DNA of 64,000 bases from Isurus oxyrinchus (taxonomy: Eukaryota), in the NCBI GenBank assembly GCA_026770705.1, contig JANJGN010000052.1, positions 2,294,001 to 2,358,000 on the forward strand. Reading direction: 5' to 3'. The position numbers and the translations under genes are program-made. This document shows positions 11,306-52,068 of this stretch, in pieces (position 1 is the stretch's first letter; every line of letters starts with the position of its first letter). The notes under the pieces were generated by a model that saw only the letters and a program-made list of their open reading frames with translations, ran no database searches and was not told the origin of the DNA.

Positions 11306-11309
11306 TAAT

Positions 11310-14728: not shown

Positions 14729-14768
14729 ATGGTCGGGAAATCTTACTTCCTCCTGTCACTTCTCCAAG
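14729..14768 (+). CDS. Gene B leader exon MVGKSYFLLSLLQ
   Basis: ATG...CAAG|GTAAT, phase 1, intact. Confidence 0.75.
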
Positions 14769-15472
14769 GTAATATCATCATCAGCTCGGACAGATATATG
14801 TTTAACAGTCTTTGTAAAAGATCATTCTTATCTCTTTATCTCTGTAACCTCCTGCAACTCACCCAAACAACTTCCCAGATCTCTGTGTTACTCCAATTCC
14901 GGCCTCTTGACCATCCCCCGATTCCCATCACTCCAATACTGGCGGCCGGGCCTTCAGCTGCCTGGGGCCTGAGCTCTGGAATTCACTCCCTAAACCTCGG
15001 GGATGGAGGAGCTCAAGAGGGTTTCATTTTACTGAGAATCACCACGACCACATCACAGCTGCAGTCAGAATAGACAGAGGGTCCAGCCCTCGCACTTCCT
15101 GCACAGTTTCACCATAGCAACCACAATATGGAAATTTAAAAATACTGAAAGTTAAACTGAAGCTCAAACCAGTCAGTTTAGAGAGATGAGATGTTTACAC
15201 AGTTTCCCTGTGTATCTTGTAGACACTGTGTTGGGTGGAAGACTGGCTTCACTAAACAGGGTCCTGAGGACCATGAGCCAATGTAGAATGAACTTGTCCA
15301 CTCCTGTGTCCAGGATTCTCTTCCATCCATTGTGAAACCTTGGGGGGTTCTTTGTGTGTCCTGTAGATGGTCCACACTGCAGCCACTGTGCCCCAGTGAT
15401 GGAGAGGGTGGATATCGAGTCTAGTGGATCTACAAACCTTCCAGAGTTAAATATTGACATTTATCTCCATAG

Positions 15473-15846
15473 TTGGACTGTCACAAGATTGAAAAGGCGA
15501 CACTTCACGAGAGGTGACAGCGCAGGATGGTTGTGTGTACAGATTCCATGTCATTACAGTTACTTATCAAATTTCATAGGGAGATCACGTGTCGGAATCT
15601 GCTTGAAAGGAATAGATGGGAACCCACAGCCGAAATGGTCTATAGCCTTTCATTCCGAGGGTCACAGTCACAGGGATCAAAGATTCCACCATCGGACCCG
15701 GCTGTCTGGAGACCTGAAAGATGGCGACTGTTCCCTGATTATAAACAACATCAGACGGGAAGATGCAGGAACTTATTTTTTCAGAATAGAATTTGACAGC
15801 AGGAATAGATACAACTACTATCCTGTAACCCAGCTTCACGTTTCTG
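15473..15846 (+). pseudogene. Gene B V-set exon V4, disabled
   Basis: Reads VGLSQD-TGA (stop at the conserved Trp) and has a 1-bp deletion (ggttgtgtg versus ggttcgtgtg); the downstream part retains YFFR. Confidence 0.85.
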
Positions 15847-16315
15847 GTAAGTGCTGTGTTATGATTACTCAACAATTCACATTCAACACTCAATGGGAGA
15901 TAACACAAACTGTGACGTTTACATATTAACACAAAATGCAGCTTATTATAACTTGCTATCTGATTCTCAATAACCTGGTGATAGCTTCCAGTTCAGTCCT
16001 AAAGCAACCTCTAATACTCACTTTAATATCAATGATGAAAAGCATTAACTGTATTATCAGGTTACCACTCCCATCAATCTCTCCTGTCCTGTTTAAAAGT
16101 CTGACATATCGATAAAAGAAAGATGTGCATTTCTGTAGCGCAATTTACCACCTCAGGAGGATCCAAATCCCTTCACAGCCATTGAAATTATTCCTGAATT
16201 GTAGTCACAGATGTTAAACACAGCAGGCAGTTTGTGCACAGCAAGATCCAACAAACCACAATGTAATAAATCACCCAGATCACTGAGGAAATGAGAAGCC
16301 AGTGAACTCAAACCT

Positions 16316-16455
16316 CTGGTCTGATGAAGAGTCATACGGACTCGAAACGTTAACCCTGTCTTCCTCTCCACTGATACTGTCAGACCTGCTGAGTCTTTCC
16401 AGCAATTTTTGTTTTTGTTTCAGATTTCCAGCATCCACAGTATTCTGCTTTTAAC
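16316..16455 (+). ncRNA. Minimal hammerhead-ribozyme-like motif in a Penelope terminal-repeat fragment
   Basis: CTGATGA-A-GAGTC(atacg)GACTC-GAAAC-GTT: intact core and a perfect 5-bp stem II. Confidence 0.5.
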
Positions 16456-16704
16456 TCCAATCTCTGGTCTGAGCCTCTTCTCTCATCCAGTGTTCTCAAT
16501 TCACATGTCTCGGAGTGAACGTGTATTAAGCTGAGAGACAGAAACACTACTGCCAAAGAGCAAGAAAATCTTTCCTGATCATTGTAACCTCTCAGTTCTG
16601 ATATCATCCTTGTAAAAGTGCTTTCTCTTGTGGGACTGTGGTTTCTATTTGAACTGATGCTTCACGTTATATTTCTCTAAAAGGATCCATTCTCTGTCTG
16701 TTAG

Positions 16705-17001
16705 ATTTCACAGATAAACCCACGACATTCCCTGCTGAAATTATTGCAGGAAAGCATGTGGATGTAAGCTGCACCATCAACACAACGTGCAATGGAACAG
16801 CAGCGCCTGTCTTAACCTGGGAAACTCCCACTGACGTACCTGGATCAGTCTCAAACACTGTAACTCAGCATGGTGTCACTCTGACCTATACTTCTGTTCT
16901 GACCCTGATCCCATCACTCAAACACCACGGACACACACTCAGCTGCAGAGTGAGATATCCATCTGTTTCATCGGAGCGGACCCTCGTACTAACTGTGCAA
17001 G
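16705..17001 (+). CDS. Gene B C2-set Ig exon (Siglec domain-2 type), intact
   Basis: tgttAG acceptor and AAG|GTAAGT donor; 297 bp, phase 1-1. Encodes FTDKP...VSCTINTTCNGTAAPVLTW...HHGHTLSCRV. Confidence 0.8.
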
Positions 17002-17324
17002 GTAAGTACATACACCTTTCATTCTACATCAGCACTCCCTCAGCGCTGACCCTCTGACAGTGCAGCCCGTCCTCAGTGTCCACATTCTCAGACCTCTCAA
17101 AGTGCTTCACAGTCGACTGAAGTTAATTGATCTTTATTTGATTATTGCTGAATGAAGAGACAAGCTGTCTAAAGTTTACATCTCGCACACACCATTCTCC
17201 ATGGCAACACGTCCACCTATCAGAGACCACTTGCCAACCAATCAGCACTCTCTTCCCATTAAGTATAAATTGTGGTTCATTTTCTGTTGGTAATCCTGCG
17301 AACGGGCTTCTTGATTCCTGCCCT

Positions 17325-17477
17325 GACATCTTAATGTCCAAATGAACAGAACAAGTTCCAACAATGAGCTGTGGTTGGTGATTCCTCCCATTACATATCG
17401 GGACACTGGAGACTATCAGTGTGTGGCAGAGAATGAACATAGAGCAGTGGAGGGGTTCATAACCATCAGTGTGGAAC
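17325..17477 (+). pseudogene. 5'-truncated half of a C2/I-type Ig exon (gene B)
   Basis: Matches the 3' half of the 282-bp exons at 36.8-41.1 kb (NNELWLVIP..DTGDYQCVAEN) and keeps the donor; the 5' half and acceptor are replaced by repeat sequence. Confidence 0.8.
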
Positions 17478-19147
17478 GTGAGTTACACAGACTTCAACAT
17501 CTCTCTCAGATTCAAACATTGCACAAACACCCTCAAATATACAGAACTAAATAGACACGTGCAGACACACGTGTATGAGCAATTACAAAGACACACTCAC
17601 GAACAAACACACTAGCACACACTCCCCTGTGGCTTACCTGAGTACTGCACTGGAGAGTTGGCCTGGATTCTGGGATTTGTGTTCCCAATCATGTTTATGG
17701 AAGAATATGGAAATTACAAAGTCTATTACAGACACTCAGATGCATAGAGACACTCACAGATACTCTCTGCCTCTCCAACTCTCTCTCTCCCTTTAAGAAG
17801 CTTCCTGAAAGCTAACCCTTCGAACAATCACCGGCCCCAACACCTCCTTATCTGATTCTGTGTGATTTTGTTTGTGTATCTGAGAGTAAGAGAGAGGTGG
17901 AGAGGTTTAGTTAGAGAATTCCTGCTGGTGAAAATCTTACATCATTTACTCACCTTTCCAGTGCACATATTTCCCAGTATGTCCAATGCCCCTGTTTATA
18001 ATGATGACTGCCTATGTAAACGTCACACTGTAGTTACAGTCTCCCACCAGTGGTGGCATTGTAGCACTTAATCCTTGTGTTTCCCAGCTTTTCAAGCAAC
18101 TCCACTTCCCAGTTTGCTACACAAGCTGTGAGTTCATCAGAATTAAATTATTTCTCAAATGATAGATTTGATAATTCATTTTATTGAAAACTTCCTCAGT
18201 GCCTCCCTGAAGGGTTTACACTCTCTGGGAAGCAGGAATAGGCTGGATGTTGGGGAGTTCATCTTTTCCCAGAGAGTAGTGATCCTCGAGAATGTGCTGT
18301 CAGTGGGTGTGGTAGTTCCTGTTTCTCTGTCACCTTCAAGAGGGATCTGGAGTGGTTACTGACTGGGGGAGAGATCATGGAAGCGGAGAATGATACAGCA
18401 CAGGAGGAGGCCATTCAGCCCACTGTGCCTGTGCCAGGTCTTTCAATGTTCTATCCAATCAGATCCACTAACCAACACTCCACTTTACCCCATCTTCCTC
18501 CTTCAAGTGTTTATTCAATTTCCCTTTTGAAAGTTCCTATTGAATCTGCTTCCACCGCCCTTTCAGGCAGCACCTTCCAGATCACAACAACTCGCTCTGT
18601 CAAAACAAATTCTCCTCATCTCCCCCTCCAGTTGGTCAATCTGTGTCCCTCTGGTTACCGACCCTCCTGCCCCTTAAATACATCGATACTGTTCACCTCA
18701 ACCACTCCCTGTGGGAGTGAGTTCCACATTCTCCCCTCTCTCTGGGTAAAGATTGGAACTGTTTATTAAGCGGGGGGTGTAAGTCCGTGGGGGAGTCCAT
18801 CTCGATTCTGCCCGATTCGCACACGCGTCCGAGATGGATTTCCACCCTGCACTAAACGTTTCCAGAATTTTCTACAGCACAATCCTGTACACAGCGATGG
18901 AGAGAAACATTGGACAGGGAGTCCAACAGCACAATGATCCATTCTCACCAATGTTCCACGCTAAGGGGAAAGTTCCGATTGTCCACTCTTAGAGTGTTTA
19001 CAATGAAAACATTCATTCCACATTGAATCCCAGTGGATGGGTCAATATTACAGCAAATGTTGCAGTGATATGAAGCTTGATTGTTCAGCCAGAGTGAGAG
19101 ATTGAAAGCGGAGAGTCAGTGATGATTTCTTTCTGTGTGTTCTCTAG

Positions 19148-19287
19148 ACAGTGGAGGAGAGATTCTGCATGTGATCCTGATCCTGGGAATACGAGCTGTG
19201 ATATTCCTTGTGGCTGTGGTTATCACTATCACTGGAGTCTGTGTCTGGGAGAGACAAACAGTGAAAGGAAGTCGACAGACTGTTTGA
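19148..19287 (+). CDS. Gene B terminal TM exon with intramembrane Arg and short tail (activating type)
   Basis: ttctctAG acceptor, phase 1: SGGEILHVILILGIRAVIFLVAVVITITGVCVWERQTVKGSRQTV*. Confidence 0.8.
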
Positions 19288-19439
19288 AGCTTTGTACAGC
19301 AACAATCTGGTCAGTCAGTGCGGACAAATAACGTGTGATGTTGTGTTAAGTTGTAATGAAACTGGTCAGTGTCCTGGTTAGAATCACCTTCGTATCAGAG
19401 AGGCATTCCAGCACAGTAGGAGACCATTCAGCCCATTAA

Positions 19440-20010
19440 GTCTATGCTGTCTCTGTGTAGAGCAATCCACTCAGTCCCATTCCCCCGCTCTATCCCCGTA
19501 TCCCTGCATGTTTATTTCCAAGTGTCCATCCAATTTCCTTTTGAAATCGTTCATCGTCTCCACTTCCACCATCCTCGTAGGCAGCAAGTTCCAGCTCATT
19601 ACCACTCGCTGTGTAAAAAAGCTCCTCCTCACATCCCCCCACTGCCCACAACCTTCAATCTGTGTCCCCCAGTCCTTGTACCATCAGCTAATGGCAACAG
19701 CTTCTCTTTGTCTACCGTATCTAAACCCATCATCATCTTGTACACCTCGATCAGATCCCCCCTCAATCTCCTTTGCTCCAAGGAGAACAACCCCAGCTTC
19801 TCCAACCCAACCTTGTAGCTAAAATCCCTCATCCCTGGACCCATTCTGCTCAATCTCCTCCCCACCCTCTCAAGGACCCTCACTTCCTTCCCAAAGTGAG
19901 GAGACCAGAACTGGACACAATACTCTAGCTGTGACCTAACCAGAGCTTTATAAATGTTCAGCATAACCTCCCTGTGTTTGTACTCAATCCCTCGATTTAT
20001 GAAAAGCTTA
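19440..20010 (-). mobile_element. CR1-like LINE 3' end
   Basis: ORF 19629-20054 reads YKALVRSQLEYCVQFWSPH...LGLFSLEQRRLRGDLIEVYK. Confidence 0.85.
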
Positions 20011-20719
20011 TTCTTTCCATCAGCACAAACAGCAATTTCCAAGCGGACTCCCATCAGCAGACAGAGTGCAATGAAACATCGGCATGCCTGCTTCTTAATG
20101 TACGGAGAGAAACCTGCAACGAGAGATTCTCCTTCTTCTCCTCAGCAAGCTGAAACTTTTCCTTATACCTGGTGCTCCCCAGTCCTGCTGTGTGGACACA
20201 TCATAACCACGGCATTGTCTGGCTGTGTGCAGCCAACATGGTCGAATAGGAATGAACAGAAATGTGACATTGCTAAACTCTGTTCTCTGATTGGAATGTG
20301 CTTTCTGAATGCTGCACCTTTTTCATGCTGCGATAGATTGTAAGAAGCATTTGGGTTATGAATAAAATTACATTGATTAACACAAGTGATTAAAATGTTC
20401 AGCCTTTTCTGTAGATACTTATGGATTAAAATTCTTATTTTGCTGCCAGATTCTTGGCTCAAAGACATTATTTCATGTTGTCACTTTTTCCAGTCAGATG
20501 AATTCCTGTGGCCATCTTTATAATGGAAATTTTCAATGTAAACACGTCACATTGCAGCTGCACACTCCTGTCAGTGGTGGTGCCATTCCAAAACTGTCTT
20601 GCTGCACCAACACAGTGAGAATTATTCTCGACATGTACATGATGTTGTTGTTACACAGACATCAGGCGGAATCTTGGGCTGTGTCTAGAATGCACTTAGG
20701 ACATTGCAGACCACGCACA

Positions 20720-21270
20720 GAACTGACAGTGCAGCGTTTCCTCAATCCTGACCCTCGGTCAGTGCAGCGCTCCCTCATTACTGTCCCTCTGACAGTGCTG
20801 CACTACCTCATTATTGACCCTTTTCAAGTGCAGCACCCTGTCAGCACTGACCTTCTGACAGTGCAGCACACCCTCATGGCTGACAATCTGACAGTGCAGC
20901 AATCCCTCAGTACTCATCCACCCACAGTGCAGCACTCCCTCAGTACTGATCCTCTGACACTGTATCCCTCCCTCACTACTGACCTTCCGACAGTTCAGCA
21001 CTCCCACATTACTGACCCTCTGACAGTGCAGCACTCCCTCAGTACTGAACCTCTGACCGTGCAGCACTCCCTCATTACTGACCCTCTGACAGTGCAGCAC
21101 TCCCACATTACTGACCCTCTGACAGTGCAGCACTCCCTCATTACTGACCCTCTGACAGTGCAGCACTCTCCCATTACTGACCCTCTGATAGTGCAGCACT
21201 CCCACATTACTGACCCTCCGGTGCAGCACTCCCACAGTAGAGTCCCGCTGACAGTGTAGCACTCCCTCCG
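20720..21270. repeat. 33-bp minisatellite, inverted relative to 7.9-10.2 kb
   Basis: actgaccctctgacagtgcagcactccc units. Confidence 0.9.
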
Positions 21271-21493
21271 TAATGATAACAGGGGTCGTTGAAATGTATC
21301 ATACGGCCCGAGACCTGTGTTGGGGACTCTATCGCCTGAGTTTCAGCCTCTGTGGTGAGGGGGAGGAGTCTAATCCCACGGAGCCAATGGAGAAGCTTCA
21401 TGACTACAGCTGCCCAAATATGAGCTGACAGATCACACATGGTAAACGTTTTGCTGAGAGCACAAAACATCCTCGATCTTCTCACTGGTTACC

Positions 21494-21634
21494 CACTTCC
21501 TCATTTTGTCTCACAGTGACACATCCACCCTTTCTAATTAAACACACAGAGGGAGCAGCACAAGAAGAGGTCATTCAGCCCAAGCAGAGCGTGTGGGCAG
21601 TTCCTCCCCAGGCGAGCAGTCGGACAGGTCCTGG
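21494..21634 (+). promoter_or_regulatory. PU.1-site/5' non-coding exon module of gene C
   Basis: cacttcctcatttt...gtcctgg|gtaagt. Confidence 0.5.
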
Positions 21635-22084: not shown

Positions 22085-22124
22085 ATGATCGGGAAATCCT
22101 ACTTCCTCCTGTCACTTCTCGAAG
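22085..22124 (+). CDS. Gene C leader exon MIGKSYFLLSLLE
   Basis: ATG...GAAG|GTAAT, 40 bp, phase 1. Confidence 0.8.
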
Positions 22125-23479: not shown

Positions 23480-25490
23480 GTTGGATTGTATTAATTTTAA
23501 TGCAAGGAGTCTGACAGACTTGCATTCTCCTGCAGGTGTAATGTTGCAGCTCCCTTGAACCTGCAAATATTGTTGAATCTGTCTGCATATTTCAATGTTA
23601 TGTCATGAACTGAGCTGATGGGATAGTTTCTGAGACTGGGACAGACATAAATCCATTGGCTTTCGGCCGGACTGGACAATCATGGAAGTGGGTGGGGCCA
23701 GAAAATCCCACCCCTATGGGAACATTTTCAGTTAATTTGATGTGCCCAGAGAGATCAATAAAGACCACAATCCACAATTTATTGGCAAGCCACGTCAGGA
23801 TATGTGTGAGAGGTGGAATATCGATCACCGCTCCTAGTCTCGTCGTGTACATCATCGCCATTTCCTGGTTTGTCAGTCACCACATGTATATGTTCCTGAT
23901 GGGATAGCGGATGGTCATTCTTATTGCTTGAAGGTTCCCTGTTGTGCAGGGTTTGATTGGATCAGCGCACGGCTCTTTGTAGCTGCATCAGCCTTTGCTC
24001 TCGTGCCCTGCCGCTGTCAATGGCCCTTTCTGCCACAAGCCTTGCAGGATTGGTGGAAAGCTGGGCATTTCCTTGGTGCCTGCAGAAGGCCACACCTTCC
24101 ACACGTCTCACTAGGTTTGGATGTTCTAGTGAGTGTGTCAACAATTGATGTTGTACTGAGGACCTGTAAGCTTCGTTGACCTGCGAGGATCACTTCGTAT
24201 TTATGTCCATCCTTGAGTAGCTCTTCAATGCTATAGGTTTTGGTCTTATCTAGCAGATCTTTCTGGAAGGCTTCCATGGGAGTGGATGTAATCACCAACT
24301 CAACAACTCTGTCTGCAGGCTCTGTGTTTGAAATCACAGTGCGTACCCTTTTCTCTACATCGGCTGATGAAGTGGTCTATGGATTGTGTAGGCTGATGAA
24401 ATGACATAAACTCTAGTTGATGAATATGGAGTTTCACCTGATTCTGAACCTGTCTTCCAATATTGTCCGTATCTATTGGGGATCCTTTCGCTCTTCTGCT
24501 GTTAATGCTGACGTGCTCAGCCTGTGTAGACCTTCATTCCCAATCGCGAGGTGAATTTTTATGGCTTGCTCGTCTGGTTCAGTCACACCTGAATCAGGAA
24601 ACCAGAGCTCTGTACGCTGTTTAAACATTCTGAATTCAGATAGTCGGTCAGCTACATCCCAGTTCAAACTGGGGAATTTCGTGGACATTCTGACAATATT
24701 CCTTTGACCTTCCTTCTCCTACAGGATCTGGGATGTGTCGCTTTAGCCCCTTTCGTGTGCTTTTCCGAAGCTCCGCCCACGAAGACGGGTTGTGGCAGGA
24801 ACACACCACGGAGTAATGGAGTCTTTGTTTTTTATTCAATTTGCTGTTCAGCAATCTCGAAGCCGCCCGTTATAATCACTAACTTCTCTGGGCTGATTTT
24901 TATAATGGTTTTTGTGTGTTTGACTCTCCCTCGCTCACTATCGATCCAGCCCACACCCTGGTCACTCGCCTTCCCTGACTGAGCTAACCCGCTGCTGGTC
25001 CTGGCGATACACACTGTCCCACTCACTGACCTACAGGCCGTGTGCTGTAATCTCACCACGAGGGATCCGTCTGCTCCCCAGCTCTTTACTTGAGCTCTTT
25101 CCCGTCACTGTGTCTTCAAAGGTTTCCTGAGCAGTCAGTACACTGCGATTTCAACCCTCTCTGATGCTGTGTCTCTGTTGTGGTCTGACCAAAGCGTCGA
25201 GGGTCGTCTCATGTCATGTAGCTCGATCTAAGGCTGTTCACCACGTCATACCTGTACTGAATCTTGCTGCCAGAATGTTTGGCCACCACTGATCACCATG
25301 TTGTGTTTTTATAATGATATAAAGGCACCAGCCACTGATACGGCATTGGGTAAATACATTGTGGGTTCAGTTATTTAGAACAGGGACATGAGAACAGATA
25401 TACAAGGATAGAAAGCTGGGAGACACCTGCAGCCAAACTGTGTGAGCTGTGTTCTGCTCACAGGCCAAAGTGAAACTTGGACTGGATGGT
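23480..25490 (-). mobile_element. Degenerate Gypsy-type LTR retrotransposon (gag-protease, PBS, 5' LTR)
   Basis: Gag-like FPSLNWD..SEFRMFKQRTELWF and zinc-knuckle region CGRCG..KCPA..CKACGRKGH. On the minus strand the LTR ends CA at 25299, followed by a TGG-starting PBS. Confidence 0.75.
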
Positions 25491-27185: not shown

Positions 27186-27406
27186 ACAAACAGGGTCCTG
27201 AGGACCATGAACCAATGTAGAATGAACTTTTCCGCTTTTGTGTCCAGGATTCTCTTCCATCCGGTGTGATACCTTGTGGAGTTCATTGTGTGTCCTGTAG
27301 ATGGTCCACACTGCAGCCACTGTGCCCGAGTGATGGAGGGGGTGGATATCGAGTCTAGTGGATCAACAAAACATCCAGAGTTAAATATTGATATTTCTCT
27401 CCCCAG

Positions 27407-27784
27407 TTGGACTGTCACAAGAGTGGAAAGGTGACACTCCACGAGAGGTGACAGCGCAGGAAGGTTCGTGTGTACAGATTCCATGTCATTACAGTTATCC
27501 ATCAGATTTGGTAAAGAAACCACATGTCGGAATCTGGAAAATGAGAAGATACATACGGAACAAATGGTCTAAATGGTCTATAGCCTTTCACTCCAAGGGT
27601 CACAGTCACGAGTTATCACAGTTCCACCATCGGACCCGGCTGTCTGGAGACCTGAAAGATGGCGACTGTTCCCTGATTATAAACAACATCAGACGGGAAG
27701 ATGCAGGACCTTATTTTTTCACGATAAAATTTGGCAATGGTCCGAGACATAACGTTTCCCCTGAAACCCAGCTTCAGGTTTCTG
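27407..27784 (+). CDS. Gene C first V-set exon V5 (VGLS type): open frame, donor mutated GT>CT, YFFR>YFFT
   Basis: 378 bp, phase-1 acceptor; ends TCTG|CTAAGT where all paralogues have TCTG|GTAAGT. Confidence 0.7.
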
Positions 27785-28039
27785 CTAAGTGCTGCGTTAT
27801 AATTACTCACCAATTCACATCCAACACTCAATGGGAAATAATAGTGTTTGATTTGCTTGTTTTTTAGCCGTGTTAACCAGCGTCACTATTTTTAATGATT
27901 TGTCTATTTCTGCTCCCAGATCCATGAGCTTATTGTGTGTGATTGAATCCACATCATAGCTGTAACGTAAACCGAGCTGAGGGGTGATGACACCTCCCCC
28001 CTGAGTGAAGTGTCTCCTCCCCACTACACCTTCCACCCC

Positions 28040-29010: not shown

Positions 29011-29059
29011 TTTCCTCCCTATTACAGTAATCTCCTCCTTTATCTTCATCCACGGCAAC

Positions 29060-30015: not shown

Positions 30016-30094
30016 ATGGAAGGTGGGTCGAGTGGGTCAGTCACTTGCATGTTTATTCTGCAGCTTTAATATTTTAAGATGGTAAGAATGTAGG

Positions 30095-30870: not shown

Positions 30871-30975
30871 TTTCCTCAGTATTGATCATCCCCCCAATTC
30901 AGCCTCATCAGTAAATTTTGAATCTAGTGGATCCACAAACCATCCAGAGTTAAATATTGATATTTCTCTCCCCAG

Positions 30976-38226: not shown

Positions 38227-38508
38227 ATGCACCACGGAATCTCTCAATTACTTCTCTTGATATGATTAACGTTTCATCGATCAATATAATTGAGAGGAAA
38301 TCTGCAGTGATAATCTGCTCTGTCGAGAGCTTCCCAGCTTCTAACCTGATGTGGCGACATCTTAATGTCCCAATGAACAGAACAAGTTCCAACAATGAGC
38401 TGTGGTTGGTGATTCCTCACGTTACATCCAGGGACACTGGAGATTATCAGTGTGTGGCAGAGAATGAACAAGGGGCAGTGGAGGGGTTCATAACTATCAC
38501 TGTGGAAC
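38227..38508 (+). CDS. Gene C Ig repeat exon 2
   Basis: 282 bp, AG/GTGAGT, open frame. Confidence 0.88.
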
Positions 38509-38550
38509 GTGAGTTACTGTAAACTTCAACATCACTCACACACACACACA

Positions 38551-38597
<47 letters not shown>

Positions 38598-39500
38598 ATA
38601 AACAGGTGCACGCAAACATGCGTTCATATTCAATCCCATGTCTGCACAGGTGTGCACGCCTGTATGCTCACACACACAAGCATACATACAGAATCACACG
38701 TGTGCTTACTCACACACACACAGACATGTGTGAGTTGTCTGTTCTCCCTGTGCTGCACTGGAGTGTTGCTCCAGATTCTGCTCTGAAACACTGACGACAT
38801 CAGCTGAACAAGACCCTGTATTGGACGAGCAGCCCCCTGCACAGAGAATTGTAGGTTTATCACTCAATACCCCATTATTCTAAAGCAATTCCTCCACTGT
38901 CAAATCCCTGTGAACATCCTGATGATGTGAAAGACATTTTCTTTTCTTCTAGCACAACAGTGTCTCATCTGGTGGAAGGCTGTAATTACAGCGTGACAGT
39001 TTACATATCCACATGCAGCAAGAGCTGAGCAACTTTCAGCTTGGGCTGAGAAATGACAAGTAATGTTCATGCCACACAAGTACCAGGCAGTGAACATCTC
39101 CAACAAGAGGCAATCTAACCATCTCCCCTTGATATTCAATCACTTTACCATTGCTGAATCCCCTACCATCAACATCCTGGAGGATGTTAACAAAACAACT
39201 AACTGGACCGGCCATAATAACTGTGGCTTTAGGAGCAGGTCAGAAGCTGGGAAATCTGTTGGGGTGAAAAACTCACCACCAGCTTCTCAAGGACAATTAG
39301 GGATGGGTAATACATGTTGGCCTAACCAGTGACACCCACTTCCCATGAATGTCCCTAAAGAAACACACCAGCCGTGACCATTATAGATGTTGACATAGTA
39401 ACTTATAATGGGTAAGATACCTTGAAATGAAAGCAGATACCAGATAGAGAGAAATGAAGCGTGGAGCCTTGTTCACAATGAAATCTTTATATGTTTTCAG

Positions 39501-39782
39501 ATGCACCACGGAATCTCTCAATTACTTTTCTTGATATGATTAACACTTCATCGATCAATATAATTGAGGGGAATTCTGCAGTGATAATCTGCTCTGTCGA
39601 GAGCTTCCCAGCTTCTAACCTGACGTGGCGACATCTTAATGTCCCAATGAACAGAACCAGTTCCAACAATGAGCTGTGGTTGGTGATTCCTCACGTGACA
39701 TCCAGGGACACTGGAGACTATCAGTGTGTGGCAGAGAATGAACATGGAGCAGTGGAGGGGTTCATAACCATCACTGTGGAAT
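39501..39782 (+). CDS. Gene C Ig repeat exon 3
   Basis: 282 bp, AG/GTGAGT, open frame. Confidence 0.88.
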
Positions 39783-40769
39783 GTGAGTTAAAGCAAACTT
39801 CAACATCACTCACATACACACACATATACACACACACACACACATACACACACACACAGACACATGCACACAAACAAGCATTCATGTGCAATCCCACATG
39901 TGCACAGGTGTGCACGCCTGCATGCTCACACACAGAAGCATACATACAGAATCACACATGTGCTTGCTCACACACACACAGACATGTGTGAGTTGTCTGT
40001 TCTCCCTGTGCTGCACTGGAGTGTTGCTCCAGATTCTGCTCTGAAACACTGACAATATCAGCTGAACAAGACCCTGTATTGGACGAGCAGTCACCTGCAC
40101 AGAGAATTGTAGGTTTATCACTCAATACCCCATTATTCTAAAGCAATTCCTCCACTGTCAAATCCCTGTGAACCTCCTGATGATGTGAAAGACATTTTGT
40201 TTTCTTCTAGCCTGACAGTGTCTCCTCTGGTGGAAGGCTGTAATTACAGCGTGACAGTTTACATATCCACATGCAGCAAGAGCTGAATAACACTCAGCTT
40301 GGGCTGAGAAATGAGAATTAATGCATCACAAGCACCAGGCAGTGATCATGTCCAACAAGAGAGAATCTAACCATCTCCCCTTGATGTTCAGTGAGTTTAC
40401 TATCACTGAATCCCCCACAATCAACATCCTGGGGGATGTTAACCAAACACCGAACTGGACCGGCCATAAATACTGTGGCTACATGAGCCTGTCAGAGGCT
40501 GGGAATCCTCTGGAGGTGAAAAACTCACCACCACCTCCTCAAGGGCAATTAGGGATGGGTAATAAATGCTGGTCTAGATAGATACATCCACTTCCCATGA
40601 ATATGCAAAAAGGAACACACTGGCAGTGTCTGTTACAAATGGTGACATAGAAACTTATAATGGAGAAAGAAGCCTTGACATGCACATAGACACCAGATGG
40701 AGAGAGACGATACCTGGAGTCTTGCTGTGCACTGTGTTTGCTCACAATGAAACCTTTATTTGTTTTTAG

Positions 40770-41051
40770 ATGCACCACGGAATCTCTCAATTACTTCTCT
40801 TGATTTGATTAACGCTTCATCGATCAATATAATTGAGGGGAATTCTGCAGTGATAATCTGCTCTGTCGAGAGCTTCCCACCTTCTAACCTGATGTGGCGA
40901 CATCTTAATGTCCCAATGAACAGAACAAGTTCCAACAATGAGCTGTGGTTGGTGATTCCTCATGTTACATCCAGGGACACTGGAGACTATCAGTGTGTGG
41001 CAGAGAATGAACATGGAGCAGTGCAGGGGTTCATAACCATCACTGTGGAAT
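40770..41051 (+). CDS. Gene C Ig repeat exon 4
   Basis: 282 bp, AG/GTGAGT, open frame. Confidence 0.88.
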
Positions 41052-41089
41052 GTGAGTTACACAGAGTTGAACGTTCTCTTGTTATTAGC

Positions 41090-42309: not shown

Positions 42310-42406
42310 GGCGAGATTCCAATGAATGGAAAGCAGGATTGCTTGGAGCTGGAATCTGTTTGAGTGTTGGACTGAGTGGATTCTTCATCTTCAAGTGTGT
42401 GAGAAA
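42310..42406 (+). CDS. Gene C transmembrane exon (uncharged TM)
   Basis: ttttacAG acceptor and AA|GTAAGT donor; phase 1 in, phase 2 out: RDSNEWKAGLLGAGICLSVGLSGFFIFKCVRK. Confidence 0.75.
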
Positions 42407-43164
42407 GTAAGTGTGAAGGTTTAATTGGTTGTTTTCGAAAATGTTTTCTTCAACCTTCTCTCCTTATAGAAAGAACTTGCATTTCTATAGCACCTTTCAC
42501 AACCCAAAACCCTCCACAACCCCTGAAGAGCTTTGATGTTCACTCACTGTTTCACATCTCATGCAACACTCAATGTTTCACAACTCAGTCCTGTAACTGG
42601 CAGTGTTGACCTGGACCATAAAATACCTTGTGACTTCCTGAGGATGTGAAAGGGAACATATAACTGAAGACATTTCTTTTGTTAGTGAATGCAATCTCTT
42701 TCCATTTTCACTGTCTAATTCACTCTCTCTCTTATCTCCACTAATACTCTCCTTCTCATTCTCTCTCTCTCATTCACTCTCTCTTACCTCCACTAATGCT
42801 CTCCTTCTCATTCTCTCTCTCATTCACTCTCTCTCCAAACTCCACTAATGCTCTCCTTCTCATTCTTTCTCTCGTTCTCTTACACATTGTTCAGTCTCAC
42901 ACATTTTAAACGAGCGCTGAGCAACATCTGTTCCTTCAGAAGATCCACCTCAACACCTGGAGTGAGCAGTGAATTGAAACTCGCTCAACGACTGCTCAGC
43001 TTTACACAGGAATCACGTCACAGAGTCAGGACACAAAGGGTTAACAGTTTGCTTACAACACAACACTAAGGCCCTACGTTTCAGTGAAAGGGTTTTCACA
43101 ATTGTTCCCCAATTCCTGATTTGACTCACAGTGACACATCAACCCTTTCTCATTAAACACACAG

Positions 43165-43249
43165 AGGGAGCAGCACAGGAAGAGGTCATTCAGCCCAAGC
43201 AGAGCGGGAGGGCAGTTCCTCCCCAGGCGAGCAGTCGGACAGGTACTGG
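43165..43249 (+). CDS. Candidate gene C cytoplasmic exon 1 (a copy of the 5' exon module); alternative is a 22-bp exon at 42940-42961
   Basis: 85 bp, phase 2 to 0, TGG|GTAAGT donor, open frame (GSSTGRGHSAQAEREGSSSPGEQSDRYW). The acceptor is weak. Confidence 0.4.
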
Positions 43250-43760
43250 GTAAGTAACGGAACGATTGGAATTCACTTCCATGACCAACACCGTCCTTTG
43301 TTGATGTTGTGACTTTATAAAGACAGATACCAATGATTGATGCCTTTGAAAGATTTCTACTGATTATTGAGATCTGGGTGTGAGGCTCAGGTCAGTTGCA
43401 CGGAACATCTTTCTGGTTAAATTGTGCAGACAGGTTACACACAGTCTACGATTATATTCCCTCGGGTCTAGAAGATTAAGGAGTGATCTAACTGAGGGGT
43501 TCAAACTGATTAAACACTCGATAGGGTCGATAGAGAGAAGCTATTCCCTCGGGTGGGGGTGGGTGGTGGGGGTCGGGTGGAGTCCAGAACAAGGGGGCTG
43601 GAACTTCAGATTGGAGCCAGGCCGTTCAGGGGTGATGTCAGGAAGCACTTCTTCACACAAAGGGGAGTGGAAATCTGGAACTCTCTCCCCAATAATCAAA
43701 CCCAACACCGAATACACATCATGTTGATTGTCACTCTGTCCATTTCCATCTCTATTACAG

Positions 43761-43865
43761 AAGAGAGGCGAGGGGAAAGCAGGAATCAAATCGAACCATC
43801 ACGCTGATGAATATCGAGGTCCTGTTTATGAAAACTGTGAGCTTGGTTGGGCTTTGAGGAATCAG
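43761..43865 (+). CDS. Gene C cytoplasmic exon with YEN motif
   Basis: tattacAG acceptor and CAG|GTGAGT donor; 105 bp, phase 0-0: KRGEGKAGIKSNHHADEYRGPVYENCELGWALRNQ. Confidence 0.7.
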
Positions 43866-43994
43866 GTGAGTCACACACCACAGGATCCCCAGCCTCTCAG
43901 CTGCTCCAGTAGCCTGGTTATTGATATGGCTGCTCCAGTCCTGTATCTGCAATGTTTTATACAGTCACTCCCAAACCCAACCAAACTCACACCC

Positions 43995-44352
43995 AACACC
44001 GTTCAGAATCAATAATCAAACCCCGTTCAGAATCAATAATCAAACCTCGTTCAGAATCAATAATCAAACCCTGTTCAGTATCAATAATCAAACCTCGTTC
44101 AGTATCAATAATCAAACCCCATTCAGAATCAATAATCAATCCCCATTCAGTTTCAATAATCAAACGCCGTTCAGAATCAATAATCAAACCCCATTCAGAA
44201 TCAATAATCAAACCCCGTTCAGATTCAATAATCAAACTCCGTTCAGTATCAATAATCAAACCCCGTTCATTATCAATAATCAAACTCCGTTCATTATCAA
44301 TAATCAAACACCGTTCAGTATCAATAATCAAACCCCGTTCAGTATCAATAAT
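43995..44352. repeat. 24-bp minisatellite (aatcaataatcaaaccccgttcag), intronic
   Basis: About 15 tandem units. Confidence 0.9.
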
Positions 44353-44450
44353 TAATGTATCTATTGTGGGTGGAATTTTCGATTTGGTTCAATAATTCTA
44401 AACACTGATCACTCTGATTGTCACTCTGATCATTTCAGTTTCTATTACAG

Positions 44451-44567
44451 AAGAAAGATGAGAAGGATCTGGAAATGAAATCTAACCGCGGAGTCAATCC
44501 TGATACAGATGATGATCTTTACGCAAACTGTGATTTTGCTGAGGATTCTGTTTATGGGAATTTATAA
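44451..44567 (+). CDS. Gene C terminal cytoplasmic exon with ITIM-like SVYGNL
   Basis: Phase 0: KKDEKDLEMKSNRGVNPDTDDDLYANCDFAEDSVYGNL*; candidate AATAAA at 45341. Confidence 0.75.
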   Translation, partial: KKDEKDLEMKSNRGVNPDTDDDLYANCDFAEDSVYGNL

Positions 44568-45899: not shown

Positions 45900-47160
45900 T
45901 GACAGGAGGACATTCAGCCTCTTGATCCTGTTACACAGGAACAGCAGGAGGCCATTCAGCCCCCTCGAGCCTGTTACACAGGAACAGGAGGAGGCACATT
46001 CAGCCCCCTCGAGCCTGTTACACAGGAACAGGAGGAGGCCCATTCAGCCCCCTCGAGCCTGTTACACAGGAACAGGAGGAGGCACATTCAGCCTCCTCGA
46101 GCCTGTTACACAGGAACAGGAGGAGGCCCATTCAGCCCCCTCGAGCTTGTTACACAGGAACAGGTGGAGGTCGAATCAGCCCCCTCGAGCTTGTTACACA
46201 GGAACAGGAGGAGGCCCATTCAGCCCCCTCGAGCTTGTTACACAGGAACAGGAGGAGGCCCATTCAGCCCCCTCGAGCTTGTTACACAGCAAGAGGAGGA
46301 GGTCCATTCAGCACAGGAACAGGATTAGGACAATACAGCCCCTCGAGCCTGTTACACAGGAACAGGAGGAGGCCTATTCAGCCACTCAAGCCTCTTACAT
46401 GAGGACAGGAGAAAGCCCATCAGCCTCTTGAGCCTATTATACAGGAACAGGAAAAGGACATTCAGTCCCTCAACACCCTTCCACAGGAACAGGAGAGAGT
46501 CTCAGCCCCTCGAGCCTGTTACCCAGGAACAGGAAGAGGACATTCAGTCTCTCAACCCTCTTACACAGGAATAGGAAATCCATTCAGCCCCCTCGAGCCT
46601 GTTACACAGGAACAGGAGGAGGCCCATTCAGCCCCCTCGAGCCTGTTACACAGGAACAGGAGGAGGTCCATTCTGTCCCCTTGAGCCTGTTACACAGGTA
46701 CAGGAGACCCATTCAGCCTCCACAAGCTTGTTACACAGGAACATTAGGGGCTCCATTCAGCCCCATCAAGCCTGTTACACAGGAACAGGAGGAGGCCATT
46801 CAGCCCCTCGAGCCTGTTACACAGGAACAGGAGGAGGCCCATTCAGCCCCTCAAGCCTGTTACACAGGAACAGGAGGAGGCCCATTCAGCCACTCAAGCC
46901 TGTTATTACAGGAACAGGTGGAGGCCCATTCAGACCCTCTAACCTGTAACACAGGAACACAAGGAGATCCATTCAGCCCCTCGAGCCTGTTACACAGGAA
47001 CAGGAGGAGGCCTATTCGGACACTCGAGCCTGTTACACAAGGACAGGGGGAGGGCATTCAGCACCTGGAGCCTGTTACACAGGAACAGGAGGAGGTCCAT
47101 TCAGCTACTCACACCTGTTACACAGGAACAGGAAGAGGCCCAGTCAACCCCTCGAGCTTG
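45900..47160. repeat. About 43-45-bp minisatellite (duplicate of 11.3-13.4 kb)
   Basis: Same unit as 11.3-13.4 kb. Confidence 0.9.
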
Positions 47161-47267
47161 TTGCATGTGAACAGTCGATGGCCCTTCAACCACATTCTTG
47201 GCACGCAAAGGGCTAACAGTTTTCTAACAGTGCGAGGCAAAGAGCTGCTTTCACACTTGGTACCAAG

Positions 47268-47407
47268 CACTTCCAATTTTGTCTCACAGAGACACATCCA
47301 CCCCTTCTAATTAAACACAAATAGGGAGCAGCACAGGAAGAGGTCATTCAGCCCAAGCAGAGCGTGTGGGCAGTTCCTCCCCAGGCGAGCAGTCGGACAG
47401 GTCCTGG
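47268..47407 (+). promoter_or_regulatory. 5' exon module of gene D; PU.1 core altered (cttccaatttt)
   Basis: Homologous to 13480-13619 and 14139-14278. Confidence 0.45.
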
Positions 47408-47857
47408 GTAAGTAACGGAACGACTGGAATTCACTTCCACCACCAACACCGTCCTTTGTTGATGTTGTGACTTTATAAAGACAGATTCCAATGATTGATG
47501 CCTTTGAAAGATTTCTACTGATTATTGAGATCTGGGTGTGAGGCTCAAGTCTGTTGTACAGAACATCTTTCTAGCTCAAGGGATGAGGGAACTGCAGAGA
47601 CATGAGCTTTGGGGTGTCCTGAGGTGGTGAAAGGTGCTATAGAAATGCAAATCCTTCATTGTTTGTCTTACTTAAAGACTTGTAACTCTCTGCAGAGCAC
47701 CTATCATCCCACAGAGAATCAAATTAGTCTGTGAAGACATTGTCTAAAAGCAGTTCTGATCTCTCGAGAGCTGTCGGACAAGAGGTGAGGTCTCATTAAC
47801 TCCTTTCTCTTTCACAGCTTGAGAGTGAGAAGTGGATGGAATATCTGGGAGTGGACG

Positions 47858-47896
47858 ATGGTCGGGAAATCTACTTCCTCCTGTCACTTCTCCAAG
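47858..47896 (+). pseudogene. Gene D leader exon with a 1-bp deletion (upstream ATG at 47836 restores frame)
   Basis: aaatctacttc versus aaatcttacttc; 39 bp. Confidence 0.7.
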
Positions 47897-48586
47897 GTAA
47901 TATCATCATCAGCTTGAACAGATTTATGTTTAACAGTCTTTGTAAAAGATCATTCTTATCTCTTTATCTCTGTAACCTCCTGCAACTCACCCAAACAACT
48001 TCCCAGATCTCTGTGTTACTCCAATTCCGGCCTCTTGACCATCCCCCGATTCCCATCACTCCAATACTGGCGGCCGGGCCTTCAGCTGCCTGGGGCCTGA
48101 GCTCTGGAATTCACTCCCTAAACCTCGGGGATGGAGGAGATGAGACGGTTTCATTTTACTGACAATCACCACGACAACATCACAGCTGCAGTCAGAATAG
48201 ACAGAGAGTCCAGCCCTCACACTTCCTGCACAGTTTCACCATAGCAACCACAATAAAGAAGTAAAATAACTGAAAGTTAAACCGAAGCCAAACCAGTCGG
48301 TGTAGAGAGATGAGATGTTTACACAGTTTCCCTGTGTATCTTGTAGACACTGTGTTGGGTGGAAGACTGGCTTCACTAAACATGGTCCTGAGGACCATGA
48401 GCCAATGTAGAATGAACTTGTCCACTCCTGTGACCAGGATTCTCTTCCATCCATTGTGAAACCTTGGGGAGTTCCTTGTGAGTCCTGTAGATGGTCCACA
48501 CAGCAGCCACTGTGCCCCAGTGATGGAGGGAGTGGATATCAAGTCTAGTGGATTGACAAACCATCCAGAGTTAAATATTGACATTT

Positions 48587-48618
48587 CTATTACCCTGTAA
48601 CCCGGCTTCATGTTTCTG
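48587..48618 (+). pseudogene. Gene D V-set exon remnant (acceptor and most of the exon deleted)
   Basis: Upstream intron gacatttct is fused directly to the V-exon end attaccctgtaacccggcttcatgtttctg|gtaagt. Confidence 0.85.
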
Positions 48619-49477
48619 GTAAGTGCTGTGTTATAATTACTCAACAATTCACATTCAACACTCAATGGGAAATAACACTAACTGTGACGTTTACATATTA
48701 ACACAAAACACAGCTTAATATAACACACTGTCTGATTCTCAATAACCTGGTGATAGCTTCCAGTTCAGTCCTAAAGCAACCTCTAATACTCACTTTAATA
48801 TCAATGATGAAAAGCATTAACTGTATTATCAGGTTATCCACTCCCATCAATCTCTCCTGTCCTGTTTAAAAGTCTCACGTATCGATAAAAGAAAGATGTG
48901 CATTTCTGCAGCGCAATTTACCACCTCAGGAGGATCCAAATCCCTTCACAGCCAATGAAATTATTCCTGAATTGTAGTCACAGATGTTAAACACAGCAGG
49001 CAGTTTGTGCACAGCAAGATCCAACAAACCACAAGGTGATAAATCACCCAGATCACTGAGGAAATGAGAGGCCAGTGAACCCTAACCTCTGGTCTGATGA
49101 AGAGTCATACGAACTCGAAACCTTAACCCTGGCTTCCTCTCCACTGATACTGTCAGACCTGCTGAGCCTTTCCAGCAATTTTTGTTTTTGTTTCAGATTT
49201 CCAGCATCTGCAGTATTCTGCTTTTAACTCCAATCTCTGGTCTGAGCCTCTTCTCTCATCCAGTATTCTCAATTCACATGTCTCGGAGTGAACGTGTATT
49301 AAGCTGAGAGACAGAAACACTACTGCCAAAGAGCAAGAAAATCTCTCCTGATCATTGTAACCTCTCAGTTCTGATATCATCCTTGTAAAAGTGCTTTCTC
49401 TTGTGGGACTGTGGTTTCTATTTGAACTGATGCTTCACGTTATATTTCTCTAAAAGGATCCATTCTCTGTCTGTTAG

Positions 49478-49774
49478 ATTTCACAGATAAACCCACGATA
49501 TTCCCTGCTGAAATTATTGCAGGAAAGCGTATGGATGTAAGCTGCACCTTCAACACAACGTGCAATGGAACAGCAGCGCCTGTCTTAACCTGGGACACTC
49601 CCACTGACGTCCCTGGATCAGTCTCAAACACTGTAACTCAGCATGGTGTCACTCTGACCTATACTTCTGTTCTGACCCTGACCCCATCACTCAAACACCA
49701 CGGACACACACTCAGCTGCAGAGTGAGATATCCATCTGTTTCATCGGAGCGGACCCTCGTACTAACTGTGCAAG
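49478..49774 (+). CDS. Gene D C2-set exon, intact
   Basis: 297 bp, AG/GTAAGT, phase 1-1. Confidence 0.75.
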
Positions 49775-50097
49775 GTAAGTACAGACACCCTTCATTCTAC
49801 ATCAGCACTCCCTCAGCGCTGACCCTCTGACAGTGCAGCCCGTTCTCAGTGTCCACATTCTCATGCCTCTCAAAGTGCTTCACAGTCGATAGAAGTTAAT
49901 TGATCTTTATTTGATTATTGCTGAATGAAGAGACAAGCTGTCTAAACTTTACATCTCGCACACACCATTCTCCATGGCAACACCTCCACCTATCAGAGAC
50001 CACTTGCCAACCAATCAGCACTCTCTTCCCATTAAGTATAAATTGTTGTTCACTTTCTGTTGGTAATCCTGTGAACGGGCTTCTTGATTCCTGCCCT

Positions 50098-50250
50098 GAC
50101 ATCTTAATGTCCCAATGAACAGAACAAGTTCCAACAATGAGCTGTGGTTGGTGATTCCTCACGTTACATCCAGGGACACTGGAGACTATCAGTGTGTGGC
50201 AGAGAATGAACATGGAGCAGTGGAGGGATTCATAACCATCACTGTGGAAC
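50098..50250 (+). pseudogene. 5'-truncated Ig repeat exon (gene D)
   Basis: Same truncation point as 17325-17477. Confidence 0.8.
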
Positions 50251-51928
50251 GTGAGTGTACACAGACTTCAACATCTCTCGCAGATTCGAACACGACACAA
50301 ACACCCTCAAACATACACATCTAAGTAGACACATGCAGACACACATATATGACCACACAGAAAGACACACTCACACACAAACACACTAACACACACTCCC
50401 CTGTGGGCTACCTGACCTCCCTCAGTACTGCCCTGGAGAGTTGGCCTGAATTCTGGGATTTGTGTTCCCATTCATATTTATGCAAGAATATGGAAATTAC
50501 AAAGTCTATTACAGACAGTCAGATGCATAGAGACACTCACAGATACTCTCTGCCTCTCCAACTCTCTCTCTCCCTTTAAGAAGCTTCCTGAAAGCTCACC
50601 CTTCGAACAATCACCGGTCCCAAATCCTCCTTATCTGATTTGTGTGATTTTCTTTGTGTATTTGAGAGTAAGAGAGAGGTGGAGAGGTTTAGGAGGAGAA
50701 TTCCTGTTGGTGAAAAGCTTACATCATGTTCTCACCTTTCCTGTGCCCATATTTCACATGATGTCCAATGTCCTTGTTCATAATGGGAATTGCCTATGTA
50801 AACATCACGCTGTAGTTACATTCTCCTACCAGTGGTGGCATTGTAGCACTTAATCCTTGTGTTTCCCAGCTTTTCAAGCAACTCCACTTCCCAGTTTGCT
50901 CCACAAGCTGTGAGTTCATTGGAATTCAATTATTTCTCAAACGGTAGATTTGATGTCATTTTATTGAAAACTTCCTCAGTGCCTCCCTGAAGGGTTTACA
51001 CTCTCTGGGAAGCAGGAATAGGCTGGATGTTGGGGAGTTCATCTTTTCCCAAAGAGTAGTGATCCTCAGGAATGTGCTGTCAGTGGGTGTGGTGGTTGCT
51101 GATTCTCTGTCGCCTTCAAGAGGGATCTGGAGTCGTTACTGACTGGGGGAGAGATCATGGAAACGGAGAATGATACAGCACAGGAGGAGGCCATTCAGTC
51201 CATTGTGCCTGTGCCAGGTCTTTCAATGTTCTATCCAATCAGATCCAATAACCACCATTCCAATTTGCCACCATCTTCCTCCTTTAAGTATTTATCCAAT
51301 TTCCCTTTTGAAAGTTCCTATTGAATCTGCTTCCACCGCCCTTTCAGGCAGCACCTTCCAGATCACAACAACTCGCTCTGTCAAAACAAATTCTCCTCAT
51401 CTCCCCCTCCGGTTCGTCAATCTGTGTCCCTCTGGTTACCGAGCCTCCTGCCCCTTAAGTACATTGATACTGTTCACCTCAACCACTCCCTGTGGGAGCG
51501 AGTTCCACATTCTCCCCTCTCTCTGGGTAAAGATTGGAACTGTTTATTAAGTGAGGCCTGTAAGTCCGTGGGGGAGTCCATCTCGATCCTGCCCGATTCG
51601 TACACGCGTCCGAGATGGATTTCCACCCTGCACTAAACGTTTCCAGAATTTTCTACAGCACAATCCTGTACACAACGATTGGGAGAAACATTGGACAGGG
51701 AGTCCAACAGCACAATGATCCATTCTCACCAATGTTCCACGCTAAGGGGAAAGTTCCGATTGTCCACTCTTAGAGTGTTTACAATGAAAACATTCATTCC
51801 ACATTGAATCCCAGTGGATGGGTCAATATTACAGCAAATGTTGCAGTGATATGAAGCTTGATTGTTCAGCCAGAGTGAGAGATTGAAAGCGGAGAGTCAG
51901 TGATGATTTCTTTCTGTGTGTTCTCTAG

Positions 51929-52068
51929 ACAGTGGAGGAGAGATTCTGCACGTGATCCTGATCCTGGGAATACGAGCTGTGATATTCCTTGTGGCTGTGG
52001 TTATCACTATCGCTGGAGTCTGTGTCTGGGAGAGACAAACAGTGAAAGGAAGTCGACAGCCTGTTTGA
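51929..52068 (+). CDS. Gene D terminal TM exon with intramembrane Arg and short tail
   Basis: SGGEILHVILILGIRAVIFLVAVVITIAGVCVWERQTVKGSRQPV*. Confidence 0.78.

Follow-up and report, generated by a model that had tools for sequence, protein, structure and literature searches.

The closest described counterparts of the genes reported here are the primate pairs Siglec-5/Siglec-14 and Siglec-11/Siglec-16: linked genes with related V and C2 domains, of which one encodes a tail with tyrosine (Tyr) motifs and the other a membrane span with a basic residue followed by a short tail. Some members of these pairs have become pseudogenes and their first domains show signs of homogenization, two features that recur below. 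We analyzed 64,000 nucleotides (henceforth the window) of contig JANJGN010000052.1 from Isurus oxyrinchus, a lamniform shark (assembly GCA_026770705.1, positions 2,294,001 to 2,358,000). The window holds one intact Siglec-type receptor gene, gene C, flanked by two broken related copies, genes B and D, which end in a membrane anchor bearing an arginine (Arg).

A basic residue in the transmembrane (TM) span, a very short tail and linkage to relatives with Tyr motifs are also known from LILRA/LILRB, KIR, OSCAR and the teleost LITR; this likeness is drawn from general knowledge of those families rather than from alignment. Paired Siglecs have been described for mammals (PMC13358205, PMC4042635), the only group treated in a review (PMC13358205), and CD33-related Siglecs have been reported as lacking from fish genomes, namely those of bony fish (PMC7226832). 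A literature search on Siglecs in sharks or cartilaginous fish, and on shark DAP12 and FcRgamma, returned no relevant description. RefSeq already predicts such shark genes automatically; we found no publication on shark Siglec pairs.

An intact Siglec-type gene between two broken copies

The three genes follow one another in the order B-C-D along the forward (+) strand, from the start codon of B at 14729 to the last base of the stop codon of D at 52068 (Table 1), and exons of the window are 90-97% identical to proteins of great white and basking shark. A first-pass annotation, made from the letters of the DNA, had proposed just such a linked Siglec-like array in a cartilaginous fish: the peptides it quoted lie where it placed them, and the limits it set are the start of B and the end of D. 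Its description of the gene ends is likewise borne out. Genes B and D close with two near-identical terminal exons that place an Arg in the TM span, whereas the hydrophobic core of gene C is uncharged and is followed by a long tail with Tyr motifs ending SVYGNL.

Pfam and homologue searches were performed exon by exon, and exon phases were checked arithmetically. By domain content and closest homologues the genes of the window are Siglec genes with a CD33-related type of V domain. V-set, Ig_CD22, C2-set_2 and Ig_3 fall on separate exons in the domain order of Siglecs, V-set and then C2-set: V-set and Ig_CD22 match at 15336-15926, 27385-27864 and 30954-31424 on the + strand and at three further places on the - strand, C2-set_2 matches near 16.7, 32.1 and 49.4 kb, and Ig_3/I-set is found as four tandem copies at 36.8-41.1 kb. 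Among solved structures (PDB) the best match of the gene C V exon is human Siglec-5 (8.8e-16), with Siglec-7, Siglec-8, MAG, Siglec-10 and CD33 also found; the structure of CD22 reaches only 1e-5, as against ~1e-15 for Siglec-5, -7 and -8. The cysteine (Cys) pattern of Siglec V domains, a B-strand/E-strand pair with an additional Cys for the inter-domain bond, is present in gene C: both Cys in SCVQIPC and the one in GDCSL align with those of Siglec-5 and Siglec-7. Its YFFR Arg, on the F strand, which in Siglecs contacts the carboxylate of sialic acid, aligns with the YFFR of Siglec-5 and Siglec-7, and the same Arg is encoded by the V exon of gene B. There is some likeness to CD22 and MAG, in that a hepcidin gene lies 6 kb from gene D and Ig_CD22 matches the V exons; however, the V exon resembles Siglec-5, -7 and -8 much more than it does CD22, and both domain number and tail differ.

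Gene C (22085-44567) is an intact gene encoding a leader, a V-set domain, one domain from the first type of C2 exon (C2a), four from the second type (C2b), an uncharged membrane span and a tail of 106 residues. All 11 exons are bounded by AG and GT, their phases are compatible and no stop interrupts the 745 codons. Exon ends were set from the sequence, from homologues and from RNA joints; the membrane span was missed by a strict hydrophobicity scan and was found by a relaxed scan and homologues. The entire layout, including leader, TM exon and the three tail exons, matches that of the basking shark model P0038, and the TM and tail exons are 90-97% identical to great white P0115. The leader at 22085 is of a type (MIGKSYFLLSLL) that also begins the shark models P0038, P0075, P0132 and P0134. 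The first intron contains a pseudo-V exon, and great white P0075 retains both V types, that of the pseudo-V and that of gene C, in tandem.

The stalk of gene C is built of repeats. Positions 36671-41059 comprise four tandem units of ~1.3-1.4 kb with one C2b exon each; the introns lie inside the repeat and identity among units is 88-92%, which indicates recent lengthening of the stalk by unit duplication. In basking shark P0038 the C2b domains number two, against four in gene C.

Genes B and D are both pseudogenes in the window, in keeping with the earlier suggestion that the putative activators are decaying. Self-comparison matches 14139-15462 with 47269-48586 at 96% and 15815-19447 with 48587-52228 at 95%, the stretch corresponding to B's 15463-15814 being missing from D; B and D thus derive by duplication from a single segment, the copies being ~95% identical. 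Four independent lesions are spread over the two copies: a nonsense codon and a 1-bp deletion in the V exon of B, a 1-bp deletion that shifts the frame of the D leader, and a deletion of ~350 bp that removed most of the D V exon. The C2b remnants were recognized by aligning them with gene C's four C2b exons. In B as in D, the C2a and Arg-TM exons remain open and have kept AG and GT. Coding differences between B and D amount to eight non-synonymous and two synonymous changes, and exon identity (97.6%) is no higher than that of flanks and introns (96-99.5%); together these figures point to relaxed constraint and neutral evolution of B and D. A working paired receptor has two functional members; here gene C is intact and both candidate partners carry disabling changes.

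The tail of gene C and the match between partners

Three of the five tyrosines in the gene C tail stand in YxN motifs (YENC, YANC and YGNL), and among these only the terminal SVYGNL (44547-44564) fits the consensus of the immunoreceptor tyrosine-based inhibitory motif (ITIM). The tail of CD22 likewise has a YENx motif. The first-pass annotation had taken gene C for the ITIM-type partner of B and D, a description that the tail leaves unproven: the membrane-proximal ITIM with distal ITIM-like motif of CD33-related Siglecs is absent and a tandem YxN stands in its place. The same C-terminal bipartite motif, Y-[A/E]-N-[C/W/F], 6-7 residues, Y-[A/G/E]-N-x, is shared by 24 shark and ray proteins, with invariant asparagine (Asn) at +2 and acidic residues upstream. 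Only half of these tails (12/24) fit the ITIM consensus at position -2; the feature that is invariant in the family is YxN. A distinct, classical tail, with LLYANI and TEYAQI, is found on other shark paralogues.

Phosphorylated YxN (pYxN) is the consensus for the SH2 domain of Grb2, and the ITAM, the immunoreceptor tyrosine-based activation motif, reads YxxL/I, 6-8 residues, YxxL/I. Given the Grb2 consensus and the ITAM-like spacing, the gene C tail can be called a Tyr-motif tail but not an inhibitory one: its predicted inhibitory polarity is unproven. It is quite possible, although not what we expect, that gene C is not inhibitory, that its tandem YxN recruits Grb2- or Syk-family SH2 proteins and that the cluster is a collection of shuffled signalling modules with no on/off pair. 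The constancy of YxN among the 24 tails, the existence of a separate classical tail and, from general knowledge, the Grb2 consensus and spacing all lean this way. Yet the last motif does fit an ITIM in the window, in great white and in basking shark (SVYGNL or SVYGNV); the Grb2 sites of CD22 and Siglec-10, again from general knowledge, belong to inhibitory tails; and the first half-motif has Cys at +3 rather than leucine or isoleucine. Our preferred account is that gene C would be a sialic-acid-binding receptor whose phosphorylated tail recruits SH2 proteins, the candidates being phosphatases of the SHP type (at the last motif) and adaptors of the Grb2 type, singly or together.

The exons of this tail have a history of their own. 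Cytoplasmic exon 2 and the last exon of gene C (43761-43865 and 44451-44567) look like mutual duplicates: the introns upstream of them have similar ends, and each of the two exons begins with KR or KK and carries Y-x-N-C. The great white isoform P0096 is without cytoplasmic exon 2. In P0115 and P0096, TM and tail exons 90-97% identical to those at 42310-44567 are attached to other V and first C2 domains, which are only ~30% identical to those of the window and lack the YFFR Arg; the gene C tail module has therefore also been shuffled between ectodomains.

Genes B and D had been described as sharing nearly identical leader, V-framework and C2 exons with gene C. This is true of the C2a exon, which is 95% identical between B/D and C; in the 212 nt upstream identity falls to 87%, and nothing is alignable further out. 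It is not true of the remainder: 4 of 40 bases separate the leader of B from the sole other leader on the + strand, the V exon of B is 78% identical to that of C in DNA (~72% in protein), D has lost its V exon, and of the C2b exon type B and D retain no more than the 3' half. Two V exons of gene A, which lies on the other strand, instead match the V exon of C at 97.6% identity. Although the genes are linked, near-identical ligand-binding domains are thus not found, and B and C do not form the matched pair that had been proposed. Matched pairs do exist in the lineage, as follows from great white P0133, an Arg-TM model whose V domain is 92.7% identical to that of gene C. The low V identity between neighbours sets the window apart from the primate pairs, as does the fact that its Arg-TM copies are dead; the gene C tail with its tandem YxN, where primates have ITIM and ITIM-like motifs, is a further difference, and so is an Arg cassette common to CD22-like, SLAM-like and pIgR-like models.

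A maximum-likelihood tree of C2a (55 rows, 98 columns), short and poorly resolved within clades, groups the sequences by shark order and not by tail type. The three copies of the window fall among lamniform rows, outside the carcharhiniform clade starred in the tree (95/92), and either side of the carcharhiniform split holds a mixture of Arg, ITIM and YxN tails. With the Arg cassette common to several orders, grouping of C2a by order fits either homogenization of ectodomain exons or repeated swapping of tails. The local identity profile of B/D against C did not distinguish gene conversion from old duplication with selection. Of the homogenization proposed in the first pass, the grouping of ectodomain exons by lineage rather than by tail is thus retained, whereas gene conversion as its cause is not separable by the identity profile.

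A broader reading, somewhat improbable in our judgement, is that the Siglec-like genes of elasmobranchs constitute one homogenized ectodomain set combined with at least three interchangeable signalling modules, that is, a three-way module system with no on/off pair. The modules would be a classical ITIM/ITIM-like tail, an Arg-TM cassette common to CD22- and SLAM-like genes, and a non-inhibitory, hitherto undescribed tandem YxN C-terminus with ITAM-like spacing.

The Arg-bearing terminal exon and its transcripts

The Arg-TM exon has a phase-1 AG acceptor and 45 codons to the stop. It contains the segment ILILGIRAVIFLVAVV, encoded at 19174-19221 and again at 51955-52002, and ends in a tail, ERQTVKGSRQTV, of 12 residues with no Tyr. 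With a single Arg in its span and a short tail free of signalling motifs, carried on a conserved cassette, the exon agrees with what is expected of one member of a paired receptor.

A phmmer search with the 45 residues returned nine proteins, and all eight of those fetched match at the C-terminus of an Ig-superfamily protein. The carriers are RefSeq/GenBank models of cloudy catshark, bamboo shark, epaulette shark, whale shark and starry smooth-hound, named CD33-like, Siglec-12, Siglec-13, CD22-like, sialoadhesin-like and SLAM family member 9-like; the cassette also stands at the end of pIgR-like models, and it terminates RefSeq models in at least eight shark species. A second search returned intact Arg-TM models from great white, P0133 (270 residues; 'CD33-like'), P0129 and P0130 ('Siglec-12', with two V domains), and from small-spotted catshark, P0132 ('Siglec-14 isoform X2') and P0134. 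In these, C2a is joined straight to the Arg exon, which is the layout of B and D, and both species have intact models of V, C2a and Arg-TM with 270-273 residues. P0133, P0130 and P0132 share this layout, the Arg exons of the two great white models among them being 89-93% identical to that of the window; unlike B and D, however, these three models are intact, as is basking shark P0038 ('Siglec-13 isoform X1'), all four being automatic predictions. The core ILGIRAxIF..GxCV is invariant in 16 of 16 sequences (14 database proteins together with B and D).

The cassette belongs to no Pfam family. A search of solved structures returned no match to it, even at E 10, which sets it apart from the Ig receptors coupled to FcRgamma or DAP12. 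This absence of a match would suit a reading in which the Arg-TM forms are not adaptor-coupled activators and the Arg serves retention, a decoy receptor or a non-ITAM partner. We consider this decidedly unlikely: a span whose outer third to half holds one basic residue, followed by a very short tail, is the standard FcRgamma/DAP12 signature, and the Arg and its neighbours are invariant across Siglec-like, CD22-like, SLAM-like and pIgR-like models, which speaks for a membrane partner that is itself conserved. An intact receptor of the B/D type would most likely use its Arg to pair with an acidic residue that an adaptor with an ITAM carries in its own membrane span, and binding of ligand would then activate the cell via that adaptor.

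Absence of splicing between the Arg exon and the Ig exons was one of the outcomes that the first-pass annotation had named as fatal to its proposal, and on this point the proposal survives: the Arg exon is a genuine exon spliced to Ig exons, as seen in the intact RefSeq models and in contigs of four public runs aligned to 14600-19400 at 90% likeness, runs whose RNA status is a guess. Joints of the GT..AG type connect leader to V (14768/15473; contigs of three runs), V to C2a (15846/16705) and C2a to the Arg exon (17001/19148; three runs, each of a different study). A further such joint, from C2b to the Arg exon (17477/19148), is carried by one 674-letter contig of the fourth run, X7, which has another species label. 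This X7 contig joins 17219-17477 to 19148-19400 and thus includes 108 bases upstream of the C2b remnant, where B has no C2b homology and a TGA; the upstream stretch could reflect intron retention, or an exon that a paralogue uses alternatively.

At the B-specific positions 14732, 16756, 16776 and 16937 the contigs mostly carry the bases of other paralogues, and all four runs hold contigs with the C that is missing from B at 15532. Nearly all contig depth at 14732 has A and not the G of B; the expressed leaders are therefore not B's. Spliced molecules with the Arg exon probably derive from intact paralogues rather than from B or D.

That B or D is still functional, its lesions being assembly errors or being bypassed (by an isoform without V, or by gene C taking the D terminal exons as another 3' end), is most improbable: the open C2a and Arg-TM exons with their AG and GT, an exact match of one X1 contig to B and the basking shark models P0086 and P0125, which run from the cytoplasmic exon of one gene into the leader of the next, can be cited for it, but they are set against four independent lesions, the excess of non-synonymous over synonymous differences, the A of expressed leaders at 14732, and run X1 itself, in which part of the contig depth at 15532 is without the extra C and so backs the deletion in B.

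Taken as a whole, we think it likely that the window is part of a Siglec-like gene cluster of a lamniform shark, adjoining a hepcidin gene, in which C is intact and B and D are dead; that the B/D segment once encoded a two-domain Siglec (leader, V, C2a) with the Arg-TM span and 12-residue tail; and that in intact relatives the Arg cassette pairs with an ITAM-bearing adaptor. Several points weigh against this. The lesions of B and D are read from one assembly. The X1 contig just mentioned matches B exactly across the boundary of intron and Arg exon (18847-19156), which means that B may still be transcribed or that X1 may include DNA. The contigs are not assignable to B, to D or to a paralogue elsewhere, and the runs are labelled RNA by guess. 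The leader at 22085 is probably that of gene C, a use that would span an 8.85-kb intron and skip the pseudo-V. Finally, the coupling to an adaptor, the binding of sialic acid and gene C's signalling polarity are predicted from motifs and homology.

Neighbouring features and wider meaning

Table 1. Features of the window (positions relative to its first nucleotide; minus-strand features are given as noted in the analysis).
Feature	Position	Strand	Remarks
Gene A	7058-221	-	head to head with B; remainder beyond window start
Gene A leader	7058-7019	-	
Gene A V exon	5939-5574	-	Phe replaces inter-domain (extra) Cys
Gene A V exon	2625-2258	-	368 nt, frameshifted
Gene A V exon	589-221	-	intact; 97.6% identical to gene C V
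Gene B leader	14729-14768	+	MVGKSYFLLSLLQ, then one base of next codon; ATG, GT donor
Gene B V-set exon	15473-15846	+	Pfam V-set 1.3e-8; in-frame TGA 15490-15492; 1-bp deletion after 15532
Gene B C2a exon	16705-17001	+	open; Pfam C2-set_2 5.8e-9
Gene B C2b remnant	17327-17477	+	3' half only; TGA just upstream; tblastn covers residues 51-107 only
Gene B terminal Arg-TM exon	19148-19287	+	
Gene C leader (probable)	22085-22124	+	MIGKSYFLLSLLE; sole + strand leader between B and D; intact ATG, GT donor
Pseudo-V exon, gene C first intron	27407-27784	+	donor GT changed to CT; essential Arg changed to Thr
Gene C V-set exon	30976-31344	+	Pfam V-set 3.8e-12, Ig_CD22 7.9e-9; Siglec Cys pattern and YFFR Arg
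Gene C C2a exon	32158-32454	+	
Gene C C2b1 (Ig_3)	36818-37099	+	AG/GT, phase 1-1, no stops
Gene C C2b2 (Ig_3)	38227-38508	+	AG/GT, phase 1-1, no stops
Gene C C2b3 (Ig_3)	39501-39782	+	AG/GT, phase 1-1, no stops
Gene C C2b4 (Ig_3)	40770-41051	+	AG/GT, phase 1-1, no stops
Gene C TM exon	42310-42406	+	hydrophobic core without charged residue; 97% identical to great white P0096, P0115
Gene C cytoplasmic exon 1	43165-43249	+	
Gene C cytoplasmic exon 2	43761-43865	+	carries YENC
Gene C last exon	44451-44567	+	YANC, seven residues, YGNL, stop
Gene D leader	47858-47896	+	39 nt; 1-bp deletion, frameshift
Gene D V remnant	48589-48618	+	last 30 bases only; ~350 bp deleted
Gene D C2a exon	49478-49774	+	open reading frame
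Gene D C2b remnant	50100-50250	+	3' half
Gene D terminal Arg-TM exon	51929-52068	+	
Hepcidin last exon	58035-58163	-	8-Cys mature peptide; Pfam PF06446, 32.2 bits (cut-off 27); 6 kb from gene D

Gene A, on the strand opposite to the other three, has its three V exons in a row. On the far side of the array stands the hepcidin exon, the one synteny marker that was seen; in human, HAMP neighbours MAG and CD22, and the shark cluster may occupy that old neighbourhood.

Cytoplasmic exon 1 of gene C recurs elsewhere in the window. Four regular copies (7509-7595 on the - strand; 14192-14278, 21548-21634 and 47324-47407 on the + strand) each lie exactly 451 bp upstream of one of the four leader exons, and there is an additional copy at 13527-13619. 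Compared as protein with great white P0115 the regular copies are 83-89% identical and the extra copy 77%. In basking shark P0086 and P0125 a true cytoplasmic exon is followed by such a copy and then, read through, by the leader of the next gene. Such copies, upstream of leaders, might serve as a 5' untranslated exon or be left over from the duplication unit.

Minisatellite arrays are many (7865-10209, 11031-13380, 20723-21276, 29046-30014, 43995-44352, 45902-47162 and 61181-62229). B and D each have an array of one and the same repeat upstream (11.0-13.4 kb and 45.9-47.2 kb, respectively), and the array in the last intron of gene C (43995-44352) recurs inverted at 9034-9336. Open frames lying within the Siglec genes and in the spaces between them resemble, judged by eye alone, fragments of retroelements, with reverse-transcriptase-like stretches and a zinc-knuckle gag-like stretch: 19632-20141 (-), 24020-24718 (-), 28005-28701 (+) and 53072-54803 (-).

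Sharks and rays possess a large Siglec-5/7-like family with both Arg-TM and Tyr-motif ends, so that the paired design either dates to early jawed vertebrates or arose again independently. RefSeq predicts genes of this kind automatically, and what the window contributes at the margin is accordingly limited: it adds a cluster that lies beside hepcidin, and a Tyr tail that is a tandem YxN and may signal with either polarity. The on/off layout familiar from primates can be recognized in the window, but there the 'on' members are pseudogenes. Activating copies can become pseudogenes while the neighbour with the Tyr-motif tail stays intact, as in primate Siglecs.

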